This document shows positions 42,007-59,400 of a stretch of DNA of 64,000 nt, in pieces. The position numbers and the translations under genes were made by a program. This DNA comes from Zootoca vivipara (Eukaryota), in NCBI RefSeq assembly GCF_963506605.1, contig NC_083288.1, positions 38,626,001 through 38,690,000 of the forward strand. Direction: 5' to 3'. The notes beneath the pieces are model-generated. The model searched no databases and had not been told where the DNA came from. It saw nothing but the letters and a program-made list of their open reading frames with translations. Numbering within the stretch: position 1 is the stretch's first letter; the number at the start of each line of letters is the position of its first letter.

Positions 42007-45072
<3,066 letters not shown>

Positions 45073-50349: not shown

Positions 50350-50700
50350 AACCCGGATTTTTCTTTCCCTGTAACTCCTCGAACCGGCCGCTGCTTTGCG
50401 TATTTATGACTCTTTATCCCGGCGCCTCTTCCTTCTATACTCGCTATTTGTTGCCTCTCCTCCGATTGGGCGCGACCTTCTGCTCTTTTTGATTGGTTGC
50501 AGTGTTCCGCTCGCCTTCCACCAGCCACCTTTGATTGGGCCGCAGGTGCGTTCGTCATGCCCTTTGTACCCTACCAGAGCCCAGCTCAGTGGCGATGGTG
50601 GGTTGGCTTGCCTGCGCTGAACCCGGGAAAACGCGCGTGGCTTGTTAGAAGGGGACGGATCCTGCCTGCTCTGTTGTCCTTTGGTGCCCAGGTAGGCTGT
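50350..50700. promoter_or_regulatory. CpG-rich promoter of DCTPP1, probably shared bidirectionally with QPRT
   Basis: CpG-dense; ATTGG boxes at 50465, 50492 and 50534; candidate first-exon donor CAG|gtaggc at 50691/50692; lies between the head-to-head genes QPRT (-) and DCTPP1 (+). Confidence 0.65.
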
Positions 50701-51640
50701 GTATGCTGCTTTGCTTTCGTTGAGAGCCAGGCATGAGAGTTGCAGAGAATACCCAGAGAGGGGTGTGTGTATGTATGTGTGTGTACCGGGGGGGGGGTTT
50801 TCCTGTGATTTCTTAAGGGTGAGGGAAAGAGCCTTCTACACATGCTCAAGTGATGTGCGCTCACTTCTATTTTTTCAGGGCGTGAGCCGTGCCACTGAAA
50901 GCAGAATTTATCATGCAGCTCAGCACTGGAGAGTACTGGCTTAGAAAAAATTCTAATTCTGGGTGGGAGACACACACACTGATGTGTTGTATCTACAACT
51001 CCCCATGTGGGGAGCAGAGAAGCTACAGAGTCTGTCTGTGTAGGTGGCGTACGTTTGAAGCACGTGACTTCTCCCAAATCATCCTGGGAAGTGTAGTTTG
51101 TTAAGGGTGCATGGAATTGTTGCTCAGCGAGGATTAAGCTAGAAGTTCCCAGGACTCTTTGGAGGGAGATGTTTTGCATGTACGGTGCACAATGCAGCCA
51201 GAGATTTAGCCAACATCAGTCATACTCTGTGAAGACCCATTGAAATGAATAGACATAATTGACTTAGGTCCATTAATTTCATTGGGTCTACCCCGAGTAT
51301 AACTTGGTTGGATACAACCTGCAGACACTGTTCACATGTTGGAAAAGGCACAGGAGTTGCCAATCTCAGAGTTCCCTGGGAAGAGGGATTGCTCTTTAAA
51401 CTACCCTGGAAATTGTAACACTTGGAGGGGAATAGGGGTCTCCTAACAACTCTCAGCACCCTTAACAAACTACAGCTCCCAGAATTCTTTGGGGGAAGCC
51501 ATGACTGCTTAAAGTGGTATCACAAAGCTTTAAATGTGTGGTGTGAATGAGGCTTCGGCTAAATTATTTATCCTTTGCTGCTAACAACCACTTTGTTCAG
51601 CGAGCTTCTCTCTCCGCATCTCTTTCAGGCCTGGTCAATC

Positions 51641-51928
51641 ATGGCATCATCAAAGAGGGCTGCCAGTGAGGGAAAGTATTGCAGAGACTGGGAGAAAGAG
51701 GAGGATTTGAAGGTCTGGCTTTGCCCTGTGGCAGGAGACAATGGCAAAGCAGCCTGCCGGTTCTGCAAGGGTACGATGCCTGCTGGCTACTCTGACCTTC
51801 GGCTGCACATGGCCACGGCTGAGCATCAAAAGCATTTGCCTCCAGGCTGCTCTGTGCCTTTGGCTGATGATGGGCTTGGTGACCTGAAGCATTCTGGTAC
51901 TGGAGCCACCATGCCCAGGAGGACAGAG
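51641..51928 (+). CDS. Zinc-finger-encoding exon (C-x2-C-x13-H-x5-H, BED/TTF-like, transposase-type); putative N-terminal exon of DCTPP1
   Basis: Acceptor tctttcag| at 51628, start context ATCATGG at 51641, 96 open codons including KYCRDWEKEEDLKVWLCPVAGDNGKAACRFCK...DLRLHMATAEH, phase-0 donor GAG|gtaacg at 51928. Confidence 0.75.
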
Positions 51929-52126
51929 GTAACGAACGGGAGATGTCCTATGAGTGAGTTGTGTCTCTCTGTGAGCAGAAGGGTGTTATGTGAGTTGTAA
52001 TTCCAGGGTTTCTGGAAGCATATCCAGAATATCTTATCGGTATTGTGTATATATGTACCTCCAGAATATCCTGTGGATAGAAATATCCAATGGGTATGCA
52101 TAGAAGTATATAAGTACAGTATAACA

Positions 52127-52379
52127 CAGGACTCCCCAAACTAAGGCCCAGGGGCCGGATGCGGTCCAATCGCCTTCTAAATCCAGCCCGCGGACGGTCC
52201 GGGAATCAGCATGTTTTTACATGAGTAGAATGTGTCTTTTTATTTAAAATGCATCTCTGGGTTATTTGTGGGGCATAGGAATTCGTTCATTCCCCCCCCC
52301 CCGAAAATATAGTCTGGCCCCCCACAAGGTCTGAGGGCCAGTGGACCAGCCCCCTGCTGAAAAAGTTTGCTGACCCCTG
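52127..52379. mobile_element. hAT-Charlie-like MITE
   Basis: Termini CAGG..CCCCAAACT / AGTTTGCTGACCCCTG, internal GGCCC motifs, TSD GTATAACA/GTATAGCA. Confidence 0.8.
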
Positions 52380-52641
52380 GTATAGCATATTCTATTATTA
52401 TTATTATTATTATCTATCCTATTTTTTTCGGGGACAAGCGGGGCTTTCGGCCAGCAGGGAATAGATTAGTGCTTGACCTAAAATAGCTGCCAGGTTTAGC
52501 TCGCAATGCCCAATTTCAACCATTTTAAACTGCCAATAGCAAATTGATGGAAAAAATCCTTACTAGTTGTTTGGAATGAAGGCGCACAGTTACCGTGACT
52601 TCCTTTGCCAAGCCTTGTTCCCATCGGCGGGTTCACCAAAG

Positions 52642-54924
52642 GCAAAAGAGGAAGAAATGGATGAGGTGTTGGTGAGGAACAGGAACGGAAATTCAGCAGA
52701 GACGTTTCAGTTCAGCGCTGAGCCTACCTTGGAAGACATGTGAGACACCCTCCTTTCTCTCTTCCCACCTCACAGGCCCCACATTTATGGTTGATTATAA
52801 CTTTACCCTCTCCTCCTTCCCACCCCCAAATCTGCACCAATGTACAGGGGTCATTGGTAAGGCAGAAGGCGGGGAGATTAACAGTAGGTGGCGCCAGAGC
52901 CATTGAGAGGCGGAGCCATCCCCTGATTGGTTGTAAGTAAAGAGGCAGGCAAGTGGAGATTAGCCAAGAGCAAGTCTGAAGCTGCTGTGGCAGTGCCCCC
53001 TTTGCGCTAATGGACCAGCCTCTGCTGAACACAGCATCAACCTCTTTTCACCTCTCTTTCTCTCCCACAGCCGAAGACTCCAGTCTGGTTTCACAGCCGA
53101 GCGCGGCTGGAGGAAGTACCACCAGCCTCGGAATCTGCTGCTTGCTCTCGTCGGGGAGGTTGGGGAGTTGGCGGAGCTCTTGTGAGTACAGGTGACGGGA
53201 TTGCAGAGTGGGCCCCCATGGGCAGTATTTTGGGCAGGGAAGGGGAGAGGAGAGGAGAGGAGGTAGGCCTAAAGGTGCTTTCATAGAATCAGAAGGGTCC
53301 TTGGCAATCATCTGATCCAGCCTTTGCCAACCTGGTGCCCTCCAGAGGTTGTTGGACTACAACTCCCATCAGCTGGCACCACCTCCTGAGGTAGTCTGTT
53401 CCACTATTGAACAGCTCTTACTATCAGAAAGTTCTTCCTGATGTTTAGTCAGAATCTTTCTTGTAACTTGAATCTGTTGGTTCGAGGCCTATCCTCCAGA
53501 GCAGGAGAGAACAAATTAGCTCCGTCTTCCATGGGACAGCCCTTGAGATATTTGAAGATGGCTATCATATCTCCTCTCAGTCTCAGTGGAATGGTTTCCC
53601 TCTGGAGGTTGTGGACTCTCCTTCCCTGGAGGTTTTTAAGTAGAGGTTGGGTGGTCCTCTGTCATTGATGCTTTAGCTGAGATTCCTGCATTGAAGGGGG
53701 TTGGACTAGATGACCCTTAGGATCTCTTCCAACCCTACAGTTCTATGATTCTTTTCCAGGCTAAACATACCCAACTCCTTTAACTGTTCTTCATAAGGCT
53801 TGGTTTCCAGACCCTTGATCATCTTGGTTGTCCTCTGCACATGTTCCAGCTTGTCAGTATTATTCTTAAGTGACAGTGCCCAGAACTGGGCACTCAGGGT
53901 AACACTTCATACATCTGATAGAGTGGTCTGCAGTTGACGAAAGCTTACGCCACAATAAAGTTGTTAGCCTTTAAGATGGTGGCAGGGTGGACTCCTTTTC
54001 AGCCCTAGAGCCACATTCCCCTTTCCCGGAGACAAAAGTGGGCAGAGCAATCAGTCTAAATTTTATCTTCATAAGGTAGGTTAATGTCTACACCAGGCAT
54101 CCCCAAACTTCGGCCCTCCAGATGTTTTGGACTACAATCCCCATCATCCCTGACCATTGGTCTTATTAGCTAGGGATCATGGGAGTTGTAGGCCAAAACA
54201 TCTGGAGGGCCGCAGTTTGGGGATGCCTGGTCTACACGCATCTCTCTCTGTCCTTCAAGAGGCATGATTGGTGTTCAAGGACACATTTGAGCCAGGCAAA
54301 ACCTCTCAAGGAGGCTGGGGGGGGGCGGCCTAAGCAGAGTTCCAAGAGCGAGGCAGAGAGGTCTAGTGGGCACAGTCAGCTCTCAGGTGCCTCCCTCCTG
54401 CTTTAAGGTGTCCAAAGAGACTTTGCTGGCTTTGCTGCAACAAACAATCATAGCTTCCCTTTGGAACTTTGAATCCCTTCTTAGCTCCTTCCCCTCCTCA
54501 CACCATCGTTTCTCCCCTGTTGCCCTTTAGCCAATGGCGGGAAGAAGCCCCTGAAGGCCTGCCGGGCTGGACGGTGCCCGAGCGCGAAGCCCTCTCCGAC
54601 GAGCTCAGCGATGTCCTCATCTACCTGGTGACTCTGGCAGACAAGTGCTGTGTGGACCTTCCCTTGGCCGCCCTCCGCAAGATAGGGAAGAACCGCCTCA
54701 AATACCCGGCTGAGCGTGTTTACGGGTCGTCCAAGAAATACACCGAATACGAGAAGCAACAGGACGGTGCAGCTGCTTCTTCCGAAGCAGCGAGGGGAGA
54801 AAACTCTTGTGTGGCTTTGGGAAGCTCCCATCCTCCGGACACAAGCTGCGGGGGCTCCAATGGCGCTGGGGCTTCAGGGCTCAGGCAGGGCAGCACCTCA
54901 AAACAGGCCTCTGCTTCGTCGTAG
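52642..54924 (+). CDS. DCTPP1: dCTP pyrophosphatase 1 (MazG-like all-alpha NTP-PPase)
   Basis: Exons 52642-52739 (in-frame ATG at 52657), 53071-53181 and 54531-54924. [54 protein letters not shown]...SSKKY. The intron positions match my recollection of the mammalian gene. AATAAA at 55797. Confidence 0.96.
53385..53890 (-). mobile_element. CR1 LINE fragments (with a nested opposite-strand CR1 3' end at about 53585-53750)
   Basis: CR1-typical sequences GAAAGTTCTTCCTGATGTT, GGCTAAACATACCCA, GGTTGGACTAGATGACC and the TTCTATGATT tail. Confidence 0.7.
54094..54229. mobile_element. hAT (Charlie/Buster-type) MITE
   Basis: TIR CAGGCATCCCCAAACT; perfect TSD GTCTACAC. Confidence 0.93.
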
Positions 54925-56405: not shown

Positions 56406-59400
56406 TCAGAGGCTGTCACACTGCTCCCCTTTGCTCTGCAGCATCTGTGCTTGCATCTTCTGCAGCATTTCCTGCATCCGACGGAGCTGGACAAAGAGAG
56501 ACGAGAGAGAGAGGTGCCGAGGTTGCCTTTGCCTTGGGGGTGGACCCACCTTTTTTGTATCGCTTGCTGGGTGCTAAGATGCAGCTGCTGAAGGACTCGG
56601 ATCTAACATCGGACAGGGTCAGCTCCAACAGAAAGCACAAACACAAAGCCTTAAAACATGCAAAGACTCACCTCCTCGTCTTTCTCGCGAATTAATTTCT
56701 CCGTCTCGGCCAGAGGCAGGAGTGGCAGCTCAGTGGCACTTTGACGTGACAGTTTCCTAGGGAGGTGAAAGAGAGCTGGTGATAGAACACGGGAAGATCC
56801 TGGCTCCTGCTTGTACATTAGCTGAGGAGAAAGGCTGTAGCCCAGGGGTAGAGCACACGTGTCTTGCATGTGGAAGGTCCTGGGTTCAATCCCCAGGGTC
56901 TCCAGGTAGAGCTGGCGGAGGACCCTGCTCAAACTCTGGAAAGCTGCTCCCAGGCAGTGTAGACCAGCATTCTTCAACCTTGGGTGCCCAGTCATAGCTG
57001 GACAACAATTCCCACCAGCCCTGACCATTGGCTAAGCTGACCGGGGGCGGTGGGAGTTTCAGTCCAACAATATTTGGGGACCCAAGGCTGAAGAACAATG
57101 GGTGCAGGGCATTGCTGAGCTAGATGGACAAATGGCTGGACTCTGCGCAAGGCAGCTTGCTATGTTCACTGGATCATACCAATAAAGCAGTGCAGCATAG
57201 CGGCAAAGAGTAAGTGTGACATGGCAGCAAGATAATGGGTGTAAGGCAGGATTCCTGGTTAACTATGAACAAACAGCATGCTAGTGCCTGCAGCACATTC
57301 CACCCTGCCTGCAAGCAAGGAGTGGGCTACATACATACCCCTACCTGAAGCATTACTAACACAGCTCTTTTCCCCAGTCCTTAAGCCAGGATGAGGGAAA
57401 CCTTTGGCCCTCCAGATGTTGCTGAAATAAGACTCCAATCAAGCCTAGCAGGGGAGGACCTGGGATGATGGGAGCTGTAGTTCAGTAACATCTGGGTGGG
57501 CAAAGGTTCCCCACATCTGCCTTAAAAGCACTTTGTTAAATTGCCAGTAGGGAGTTAAGTGAAGGAACTGGGAACTGCCAACTTACATCCTCGGTATTTG
57601 CTGGATAGAACTTGTCTTTTTAAAGGATATATCAGTGTGGAGTGTGTGCAGTTCCGTTTTATGGTCATTTTCCTGTCTTAAATTAACCAGACTCTCTCCA
57701 GACTCTCTGTTCATCTCATAACTGAGCCTTCTGCCCTGGCCTGTCCAAAGCCTCTTCCCTTACAGAAAACAGAATCTGCTTACGCGCGGCTGCTGCGGTC
57801 TCGTGCCCCAGGTCTGGTCAGACTCTGAATGCACTGCGCGCGGTAGTTTTCGTAATGGACTTCGTGGGTCACATCCTTTAAGTCCTGCATATGGGTTTGA
57901 ATCAGCATGTTCCGAAGTTTGAGGAAGTCGCAGTGAGCAGCGTTTTCCACTAGGGGGTGGGGTGGGGGAAAATAGGAAGTTGAGATCAGTAACTTCCTTT
58001 GACACAGCGCCCTCTACTGAGTGCCCTCTCAATGCAACTTACCTTCCACTGTCCCCCAAGGATATTGCCGTCCCCGGAACACTTTGTCCTTCGACTCTTT
58101 GACCACCTGACTGGATCCAATCACAGCAAAGGGGATGCTTTGCTGCAGGAAGAATGCCAATGAGGCCCATTATTGCTCCACCTTTTCTATCCCACCCGGT
58201 ACTTCTCCCCCACAGAGGGAAGACCAGACCAGAGCTCATCACCTTCATCTCCGCATCCTGAGCTTTGAACTCTTCGTCTTCATCCGAGTCACAGTCAGGA
58301 AACTCGTAGATATTGATCCCATTTTCCTCTAGCTCCTGCCGGATCTGTATGTCCAAAGGAATCAAAATGAGGAGCTAAAATACCCAGGAAATGTAGCTAT
58401 GCAGAGGACAGGACTAGCAGTGGGGTGTGTGAAGAAATTGGCTCCAGAGGTGCAGGTATTGCAATGAGATTTCCTGTAGAGAGCGCTGGAGGTTCCATAT
58501 CCTTATGGTAAGGTGTTTACTTCAGACAAGCGTGCTACTTGCTGCATGCACCTGTTCCAACCCAGCATATATGAGTTTCCCCTGCAACACCCCTTTCAGA
58601 AGCCTCCCACAGGAACATAGGGGCTGCCCCACATGGTGTCAGGCCATTGGTCCATCTAGCTCTGTCATTGATTGACAGAGGCTCTCCAGGGTTTCAGGTT
58701 GGGAGTCTACCTGGAGATGCCGGGGATTGAACCTGGGACCTTCTGCATGCAAAGCAGATGCTCTTCCAGCTGAGCTACGGTGGCCCTTCCCCTTTCTCAC
58801 CTTCTCTTTCTTGTGTTTCACCTCTGTTGGAGTCAAGCTGTCCGCCTTTCCGATCACCGGCACAATATTGACTTTGTCGTGGATGGCTCGGAGGAATACA
58901 ATGTCCAGGGGGCGGAGCCTGTGGCAGAGGGGCGGGATCAAAATCCTTGACCCCTCTTTTCAGAGCCCCTAGCAGTTCTGCCTCCTACCCCTACTCACCC
59001 CTGGAGTCTCAAAGCTGGGCTTGTTTGCACAATTGGTTGAATTGTGATTGCCCTCTCTCGCCATTCATTCATTTTTTAATAAAATTTTTTAAAAAACCAA
59101 TCAGGATTCCAGCCCACGTAAGATCTGGCTGCCAGGTTTGTGCTGATAAGCTGGGCTGTCAGCACTAAAGGAAGTTGGCACATGCTCAGTGGCACTTTAT
59201 TATGCTGCCACCCATCCCAGCAATGAACTAGGTGCTGGAAATAAAAACCATGGAAGCTGCCCTTCATTTGGAGAGCTGCTGTCCTTTCAAGTGCTGAAAG
59301 ACATGACTCTGACTCCCTATGGCCACTATGACCAAACCCTAAAGCTCCACACATCTTACCCGTGTCCAAAGGGTGAGAGGACATAAAGACAGCAGTGGAC

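Follow-up and report, generated by a model that had tools for sequence, protein, structure and literature searches.

A hAT-transposase zinc finger joined in frame to dCTP pyrophosphatase 1 in Zootoca vivipara and other squamates

Introduction

How does an enzyme that sanitises the nucleotide pool come to carry the finger of a DNA transposase? The gene for dCTP pyrophosphatase 1 (DCTPP1) in the lizard Zootoca vivipara raises this question. In the window analysed here, a stretch of 64,000 nucleotides (NCBI RefSeq assembly GCF_963506605.1, contig NC_083288.1, positions 38,626,001 to 38,690,000 of the forward strand), a first-pass annotation made from the letters alone had noted an intact exon upstream of the canonical DCTPP1 exons, and had proposed that it encodes a zinc finger of hAT-transposase descent fused in frame to the enzyme. 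Known vertebrate transposase captures have mostly made transcription factors, and the DCTPP1 enzyme is known to be oligomeric. We put at roughly 80% the probability that Zootoca DCTPP1 has an extra 5′ coding exon from an ancient hAT host-transposase fusion, with a product of about 306 amino acids (aa) in which the finger would serve for targeting or interaction.

Results and discussion

The finger exon is spliced in frame to DCTPP1

Every DCTPP1 exon in the window matches two Zootoca RefSeq entries named "dCTP pyrophosphatase 1" at 100% by tblastn, and the whole locus is Zootoca vivipara DCTPP1 (Table 1). The exons were compared with the databases one at a time, with database proteins representing the complete product. 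The exon in question can be read directly in the sequence as the first-pass annotation had described it: a good acceptor (TCTCTTTCAG followed by G, exon start 51629), an ATG at 51641 in good context (A at -3, G at +4), and 96 codons that end in phase 0 at 51928 with the junction GAG/GTAACG. The encoded peptide contains Y13, W17, W26 and A37 ahead of and into the series C39-x2-C42-x13-H56-x5-H62, the finger spacing and upstream tryptophan pattern claimed for it.

RNA evidence comes from Logan contigs labelled Zootoca vivipara (set X1) and from three raw RNA runs (X21-X23). The first X1 contig, of 446 nt at depth 14.8, spans 51626-51928 and runs on directly into 52612-52739. Another, record 6, has a GT..AG joint from 53181 to 54531, which marks X1 as spliced RNA. 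The junction from 51928 to 52612 is in frame, and exon arithmetic gives a fused length of 96 + (128+111+391)/3 = 96 + 210 codons, or 306 aa; the RefSeq proteins of Podarcis and Lacerta are likewise 306 aa long. The finger exon has about two thirds of the depth of exons 3-4 (14.8 vs 22.1), at most a coarse hint that the fused form is a major transcript in the X1 sample. In the X21 run a few raw reads lie on the finger exon at ~3x depth, their first mates on the minus strand as expected for plus-strand RNA.

The first-pass annotation had placed the exon-2 acceptor at 52640-52641, with a protein of ~296 aa. That acceptor does open exon 2 in frame, at 52642, and corresponds to RefSeq isoform X2 (296 aa in P. 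muralis, 295 aa in P. raffonei), but the RNA joins 52612 instead, 30 nt upstream of 52642, and so adds ten codons (ALFPSAGSPK); the in-frame fusion held and its length became ~306 aa. A third acceptor AG, at 52565-52566, gives an exon start at 52567 that is also open in frame and equals the 321-aa P. muralis model. All three in-frame forms (321, 306 and 296 aa) are modelled by RefSeq in Podarcis muralis. In a skink, a Logan contig of 1,483 nt, which must be a spliced mRNA, holds a complete fused open reading frame (ORF) of 256 aa (P0151).

Upstream of the finger exon, the proposed junction from 50691 to 51629 is present in the RefSeq model XP_034990453.1 (P0298), its sole source; the X1 contig has 15 unplaced letters 5′ of 51626 and no RNA junction there. 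P0298, the older model, has 355 aa and consists of the exon-1 ORF from ATG 50557, which is in frame with the finger exon and supplies residues 1-45 at 100% identity, the finger exon, and the in-frame junction ...RRTE/ALFPSAGSPK.... The exon-1 ATG region is probably 5′ untranslated region (5′UTR), because the Podarcis and Lacerta models begin at the finger-exon ATG and not at 50557.

One could ask whether the finger exon is a separate small gene that read-through transcription, annotation or assembly has linked to DCTPP1. It does have an ATG of its own, and the skink sequence P0002 is an intron-retaining ORF with the finger only. Yet more than 25 species share this phase-compatible junction and the "AL..." exon that it leads to, the spliced X1 contig contains the finger-DCTPP1 junction itself, and neither a separate terminal exon nor polyA evidence for a finger gene was seen. 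We consider such a chimera very improbable. The in-frame fusion put forward by the first-pass annotation is thus borne out by the X1 RNA contig and by RefSeq and Logan proteins across those species.

The finger belongs to a family found in hAT transposases

A phmmer search with the finger exon against 1.84 billion representative proteins returned 159 matches at E≤1e-3, headed by finger-DCTPP1 orthologues with E-values down to 1.8e-21; the exon is therefore not a chance reading frame. The same finger stands at the extreme N-terminus of four proteins with matches to hAT transposase domains. A multi-copy newt protein (P0050; pairwise E=2e-15) combines it with a sub-threshold DUF4371 match and with Dimer_Tnp_hAT at 29.7 bits, against a cut-off of 21.4. 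DUF4371 is again sub-threshold in a protein of the axolotl Ambystoma (P0005, E 2.3e-4) and in a lacertid protein (P0026, E 1.2e-5), and lies above the cut-off in a SCAND3-like prawn protein (P0128). This N-terminal placement fits the capture of a first transposase exon that comprised ATG, finger and donor.

In the family alignment A1, W17 is invariant, and W26, A37, C39, C42, H56 and H62 are conserved in at least 90% of sequences; all are present in the window exon. Family members have only sub-threshold Pfam matches to zf-BED, zf-U1 and Spin-doc (zf-BED in 10 of 48, best 1.6e-4), and the ESM Atlas neighbours of the finger are GTF2IRD2-like, zf-BED and FAM200-ZBED5 clusters. Since the exon is homologous to the N-terminal part of proteins that carry DUF4371 and hAT-dimerisation domains, we identify it as the N-terminal C2H2/BED-like zinc finger of a DUF4371-class hAT transposase, in agreement with the origin first proposed for it.

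AlphaFold2 predicts the finger alone as a confident beta-beta-alpha finger with short N-terminal helices (pLDDT 88-94 over residues 11-70). In a model of the full-length Lacerta orthologue, which has low confidence overall, the finger and a helical enzyme domain are separated by residues 67-125 at pLDDT <50, and the lacertid-specific tail is poorly predicted.

When P0026 was used as query for a transposase body in the window, only the finger matched, and a search for terminal inverted repeats around the finger exon found none other than SINE-like arms inside intron 1.

P0026 itself is the uncharacterised Podarcis raffonei protein LOC128399830 (687-688 aa), with the same finger at 50% identity and DUF4371. 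Its orthologues are found in Zootoca and P. muralis, and it is at least 90% conserved among the three lacertids; judged by its sequence, it looks like a separately domesticated hAT transposase.

The fusion is distributed throughout Squamata

A search with the Tiliqua protein, together with cluster listings, found finger-DCTPP1 proteins in more than 25 squamates, where RefSeq names them plainly "dCTP pyrophosphatase 1". They occur in Lacertidae (Zootoca, three Podarcis species, Lacerta agilis), Scincidae (Tiliqua, Lerista and the species of P0151), Phrynosomatidae, Agamidae, Dactyloidae, Anguidae and Cordylidae, and in at least eight snakes; the annotated fused proteins have 236-306 aa. Finger-less DCTPP1 isoforms are annotated as well, and Rhineura has truncated forms. 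Among the matches listed, non-squamate DCTPP1 proteins (fish, amphibian, invertebrate) span only the catalytic half of the query, and DCTPP1 of tuatara, turtles, crocodilians and birds was not among the 120 matches listed.

Geckos (six species) carry a different finger, which we call A-type (KYR.EWEKEF.WL...C..C...GG..DV..H), on the same "AL..." exon; this start of exon 2 is common to geckos through lacertids. The A-type and the B-type finger of the window belong to one superfamily (hhalign 94.5%, E=7.8e-8), and isoform X1 of Hemicordylus has both in tandem. Either the squamate ancestor had two finger exons, or two captures occurred. A tblastn search of the 64-kb window found no A-type exon, and a word-based search with the gecko finger returned gecko DCTPP1 only. 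The A-type proteins, all from outside the window, are P0171, P0173-P0176, P0178 and P0301.

The presence of these fingers on the same exon across lizards, snakes and geckos places the capture in the squamate ancestor or earlier, that is, at or before crown Squamata. The in-frame fusion has persisted in species whose lineages parted more than 50 million years ago, and lizard families diverged on the order of 150-200 million years ago. With a fusion found throughout Squamata, and with neither a transposase body nor flanking terminal inverted repeats in the window, the suggestion of an old co-option stands.

Taken together, the fusion can be described as follows. The captured exon, probably the first exon of an ancestral hAT transposase with ATG, finger and donor, joined DCTPP1 at or before crown Squamata. 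It supplies its own ATG and phase-0 donor to the DCTPP1 transcript and splices onto an acceptor inside the former DCTPP1 5′UTR. With the acceptor in that place, about 15 former UTR codons are translated and the ancestral initiator methionine becomes internal. The product of ~306 aa consists of the finger, a poorly predicted and probably disordered linker of ~60 residues, and the all-alpha MazG-like dCTP pyrophosphatase domain; the finger would give the enzyme a means of targeting or interaction.

Evidence that weighs against the fusion and its function

Several observations count against this account, beginning with the assignment of the finger. Pfam gives no significant match for the exon alone. 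For zf-BED (PF02892) there was no match to the window exon even at E≤1, and the gathering threshold was not reached. The only Pfam match was DUF7565 at E=0.21, which we take as chance. Sequence searches of the PDB with the exon or the family profile gave nothing significant (best profile match, the WBP4 finger at E=0.11), and Foldseek found no PDB match at E≤1e-3. VIA-align Z scores, all below 5, were 2.6 to ZBED2 (2DJR) and ZBED1 (2CT5), 2.0 to Hermes, and 4.4-4.7 to the U1/matrin-type fingers of TUT4, TUT1 and SF3A; on the predicted model, structure searches cannot separate a BED-type from a U1/matrin-type finger. The RNA evidence has its own weak side: the three raw runs barely cover the gene and contain no junction reads, and most of their placed reads lie in intronic repeats.

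A second set of observations concerns the window itself. It reads ...TTCCTTTGCCAAGCCTTG... around the junction, and the intron required by the X1 transcript would end in AA (52610-52611) where AG is needed. Use of the canonical AG of the window, at 52611-52612, would move the exon start to 52613 and change the frame, with a stop after 20 codons, leaving a finger-only ORF of 116 aa that overlaps the DCTPP1 ATG at 52657. The newest Zootoca RefSeq protein, XP_060137668.1 (P0296), has 222 aa, begins at ATG 52577 and lacks the finger.

These points raise the possibility that the fusion is broken in the window haplotype, that the A at 52611 brings the AG at 52611-52612 into use, and that the enzyme is made only from finger-less transcripts or through the minor acceptors with exon starts at 52567 and 52642. 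The window sequence GCCAAGCC, the early stop from 52613 and the finger-less newest model are what such a break would produce, and the window also carries derived replacements at otherwise invariant sites of the catalytic domain (GWGKY to GWRKY, LVALA to LVTLA). Set against these are the X1 transcript, labelled Zootoca, which keeps the G and has its junction in frame; the in-frame junction of the older model P0298; the two in-frame alternative acceptors; and the chance that a single base at 52611 is an assembly error or a polymorphism. We regard a break confined to this haplotype as possible but rather doubtful. Splicing to an out-of-frame AG at 52612, named by the first-pass annotation as a case against the fusion, does not occur in the X1 transcript, which retains the G of 52612 in frame, but it could still hold for the window haplotype with its AA.

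X1 and the window can be told apart at other positions. About 2% of positions in the 3′ untranslated region (3′UTR) differ, and X1 has the ancestral residue at four positions (window 53111, 54631, 54665 and 52702) where the window and both Zootoca RefSeq proteins are derived. Because of these differences X1 is a different Zootoca lineage from the window, and probably one with G at 52611. At 52611 the window has either a lineage variant, which would frameshift the fused transcript, or a base error. The derived changes are GWGKY to GWRKY, LVALA to LVTLA, DLPSAAL to DLPLAAL and SAEAF to SAETF. In alignment A2 all 20 other squamate proteins have the G of GWGKY and the A of LVALA; the third site varies between S, T and A, and the fourth differs from other lacertids. 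Such replacements may be a sign that DCTPP1 evolves fast, or under relaxed constraint, in the Zootoca lineage of the window.

The last set bears on function. In snakes a 9-aa deletion removes Y13 and W17, W26 is lost and H62 is variable; the Anolis carolinensis finger has W17L and H62Y, and that of Hemicordylus has C39H and H62Q. With ligands or tryptophans lost in this way, the finger can be dispensed with in some lineages. In addition, the net charge of the DCTPP1 finger core is -6 to +1, vs a family mean of +5.2 ± 2.0. This loss of charge argues against a simple retention of DNA binding, and a protein or RNA partner would be at least as likely as sequence-specific DNA binding, because the basic charge is gone. 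The suggestion that the finger tethers the enzyme to chromatin is likewise weakened by the charge, as computed from sequence.

A tolerated exonisation would account for both losses: the exon would be spliced and translated, harmless and of no benefit, and would persist by supplying the start codon of the main transcript. The truncated forms of Rhineura and the finger-less isoforms agree with such a history. The conservation elsewhere speaks against it. Five lizard families (lacertids, skinks, phrynosomatids, agamids and an anguid) have retained the open reading frame and each of the seven residues that define the family for ~150-200 million years, and the gecko finger at this position is a different one but likewise intact. 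Compared with Zootoca, skinks, iguanians and Elgaria have 54-64% identity in the finger core, 30-56% (once 67%) in the remainder of the finger exon plus the exon-2 leader, and 83-90% in the catalytic domain; by this measure the finger core appears better conserved in lizards than the flanking residues of the same exon. A functionless exon is, in our judgement, unlikely. Decay of the finger is seen in snakes, Anolis carolinensis and Hemicordylus, and not in the five families with intact key residues. We therefore keep the reading of an ancient fusion whose finger would serve for targeting or interaction.

Comparison with known fusions

Host-transposase fusions in tetrapods were surveyed by Cosby et al. 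(bioRxiv 10.1101/2020.05.07.082677), who screened with Pfam transposase domains and found hAT to be a major source superfamily. The DCTPP1 fusion resembles theirs in that an N-terminal binding domain of a transposase, with its own splice donor, is spliced into a host gene and conserved across species. It differs in that the partner is a metabolic enzyme and not a regulatory domain of the KRAB or SCAN type, in that only the finger was kept, and in that Pfam does not call the domain. DCTPP1 is absent from the text and from ten supplement files of that study; a survey built on Pfam missed the fusion because the finger has no Pfam model. A literature search found nothing that links DCTPP1 with lizards or squamates, a zinc finger or a transposase. 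The fusion is thus a host-transposase fusion gene, unusual for its enzyme partner, already predicted in RefSeq under a plain name and apparently undescribed.

The finger shares the arrangement C-x2-C...H-x5-H, the upstream aromatic residues and the N-terminal site with the BED-type and Spin-doc-type fingers (PF02892, PF18658) of hAT transposases and of the domesticated descendants ZBED5, FAM200, GTF2IRD2 and SCAND3. Unlike these, the window exon falls below every Pfam threshold, and its structural Z to ZBED1 and ZBED2 is the low value given above. As for the enzyme, the all-alpha MazG-like domain with EVGELAE and DELSD is that of mammalian DCTPP1 (RS21-C6; PDB 6SQW, 2A3Q, 7MU5, 2OIG), whose solved chains, in contrast, have at most 170 aa and no finger.

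Fingers of the same family also stand N-terminal to other enzymes: QPRT of the ascidian Phallusia mammillata (CAB3265344.1), NIF3-like protein 1 (NIF3L1) of mites (RWS29648.1, KAG9511145.1) and a pyrroline-5-carboxylate reductase (P5CR) from Logan contigs. These fusions, compared here as protein sequences, have one or more finger copies before the enzyme domain and, coming from different phyla, are presumably independent captures. They suggest a recurrent capture of this finger family by metabolic enzymes, a phenomenon that may be broader than squamates. The enzyme-finger proteins, from outside the window, are P0039, P0028, P0123, P0040, P0008 and P0032. One may speculate, with considerable reserve, that the finger is a functional, squamate-wide retargeting module that would take the pyrophosphatase of dCTP and modified dCTP to a specific nucleic acid or protein partner, within a wider pattern of repeated hAT-finger capture by the housekeeping enzymes DCTPP1, QPRT, P5CR and NIF3L1 in distant animals.

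An enzyme that sanitises the nucleotide pool has thus carried a transposase finger, apparently for as long as squamates have existed, and squamate RefSeq entries for DCTPP1 carry an unannotated domain. The lineages form a natural experiment, with the finger intact in lizards, decayed in snakes, anoles and a cordylid, and a paralogous one in use in geckos; their comparison could reveal what a finger of nucleic-acid type does for a soluble enzyme.

The DCTPP1 locus and its neighbours

The coordinates of the locus are collected in Table 1. In the likely promoter, three copies of GATTGG (inverted CCAAT) lie at 50464-50469, 50491-50496 and 50533-50538. Exon 4 matches MazG-like PF12643 (E=1.8e-7, 31.7 bits vs a cut-off of 27) and the solved mouse and human DCTPP1 chains (PDB 6SQW, 2A3Q; E=2.9e-16). 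The metal-binding motif pair of the MazG-like family is E-x2-E ... E-x2-D; the acidic pair EVGELAE (exon 3) and DELSD (exon 4) can be read in the sequence, and activity is predicted. The 3′UTR extends to at least 55600, the position reached by X1 record 6.

Table 1. Features of the DCTPP1 locus in the window
Feature	Position	Strand	Description and evidence
Likely DCTPP1 promoter	50440..50700	+	GC-rich (GC 0.55-0.62); three inverted CCAAT boxes; predicted from sequence
Exon 1, 3′ part	50557..50691	+	In-frame ATG 50557; donor GTAGGC; probably 5′UTR
Zinc-finger exon	51629..51928	+	ATG 51641; 96 codons; phase-0 donor; X1 RNA contig covers 51626-51928
Finger core, residues 11-66	51671..51838	+	W17, W26, A37, C39, C42, H56, H62; family alignment A1; AlphaFold2 pLDDT 88-94
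Exon-2 alternative acceptor cluster	52565..52641	+	Sites at 52565-52566, conserved site (exon start 52612), 52640-52641
DCTPP1 exon 2	52612..52739	+	Former 5′UTR codons, then ancestral ATG 52657; donor GTGAGA; joined to 51928 in X1 contig
DCTPP1 exon 3	53071..53181	+	Conserved GEVGELAE; X1 joint 53181 to 54531, GT..AG, depth 22.1; tblastn with orthologues
DCTPP1 exon 4	54531..54924	+	MazG-like core with DELSD; lacertid tail ~55 aa; stop 54922-54924

In all runs, RNA depth over the intronic repeats at 52057-52430 and 53553-54300, SINE-like or other transposable elements, is very high and chimeric joints are numerous; the reads over these repeats originate from genomic copies elsewhere and not from the DCTPP1 locus. 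The gene order is QPRT - DCTPP1 - septin, with the first QPRT exon upstream (44458-45072, minus strand; QRPTase_N and QRPTase_C) and septin exons downstream (58039-58941, minus strand). The C-terminal extension of lacertid DCTPP1, encoded at 54757-54921, adds ~55 Ser/Gly/Ala-rich residues after ...TEYEK, the point at which all other squamate DCTPP1 proteins stop.

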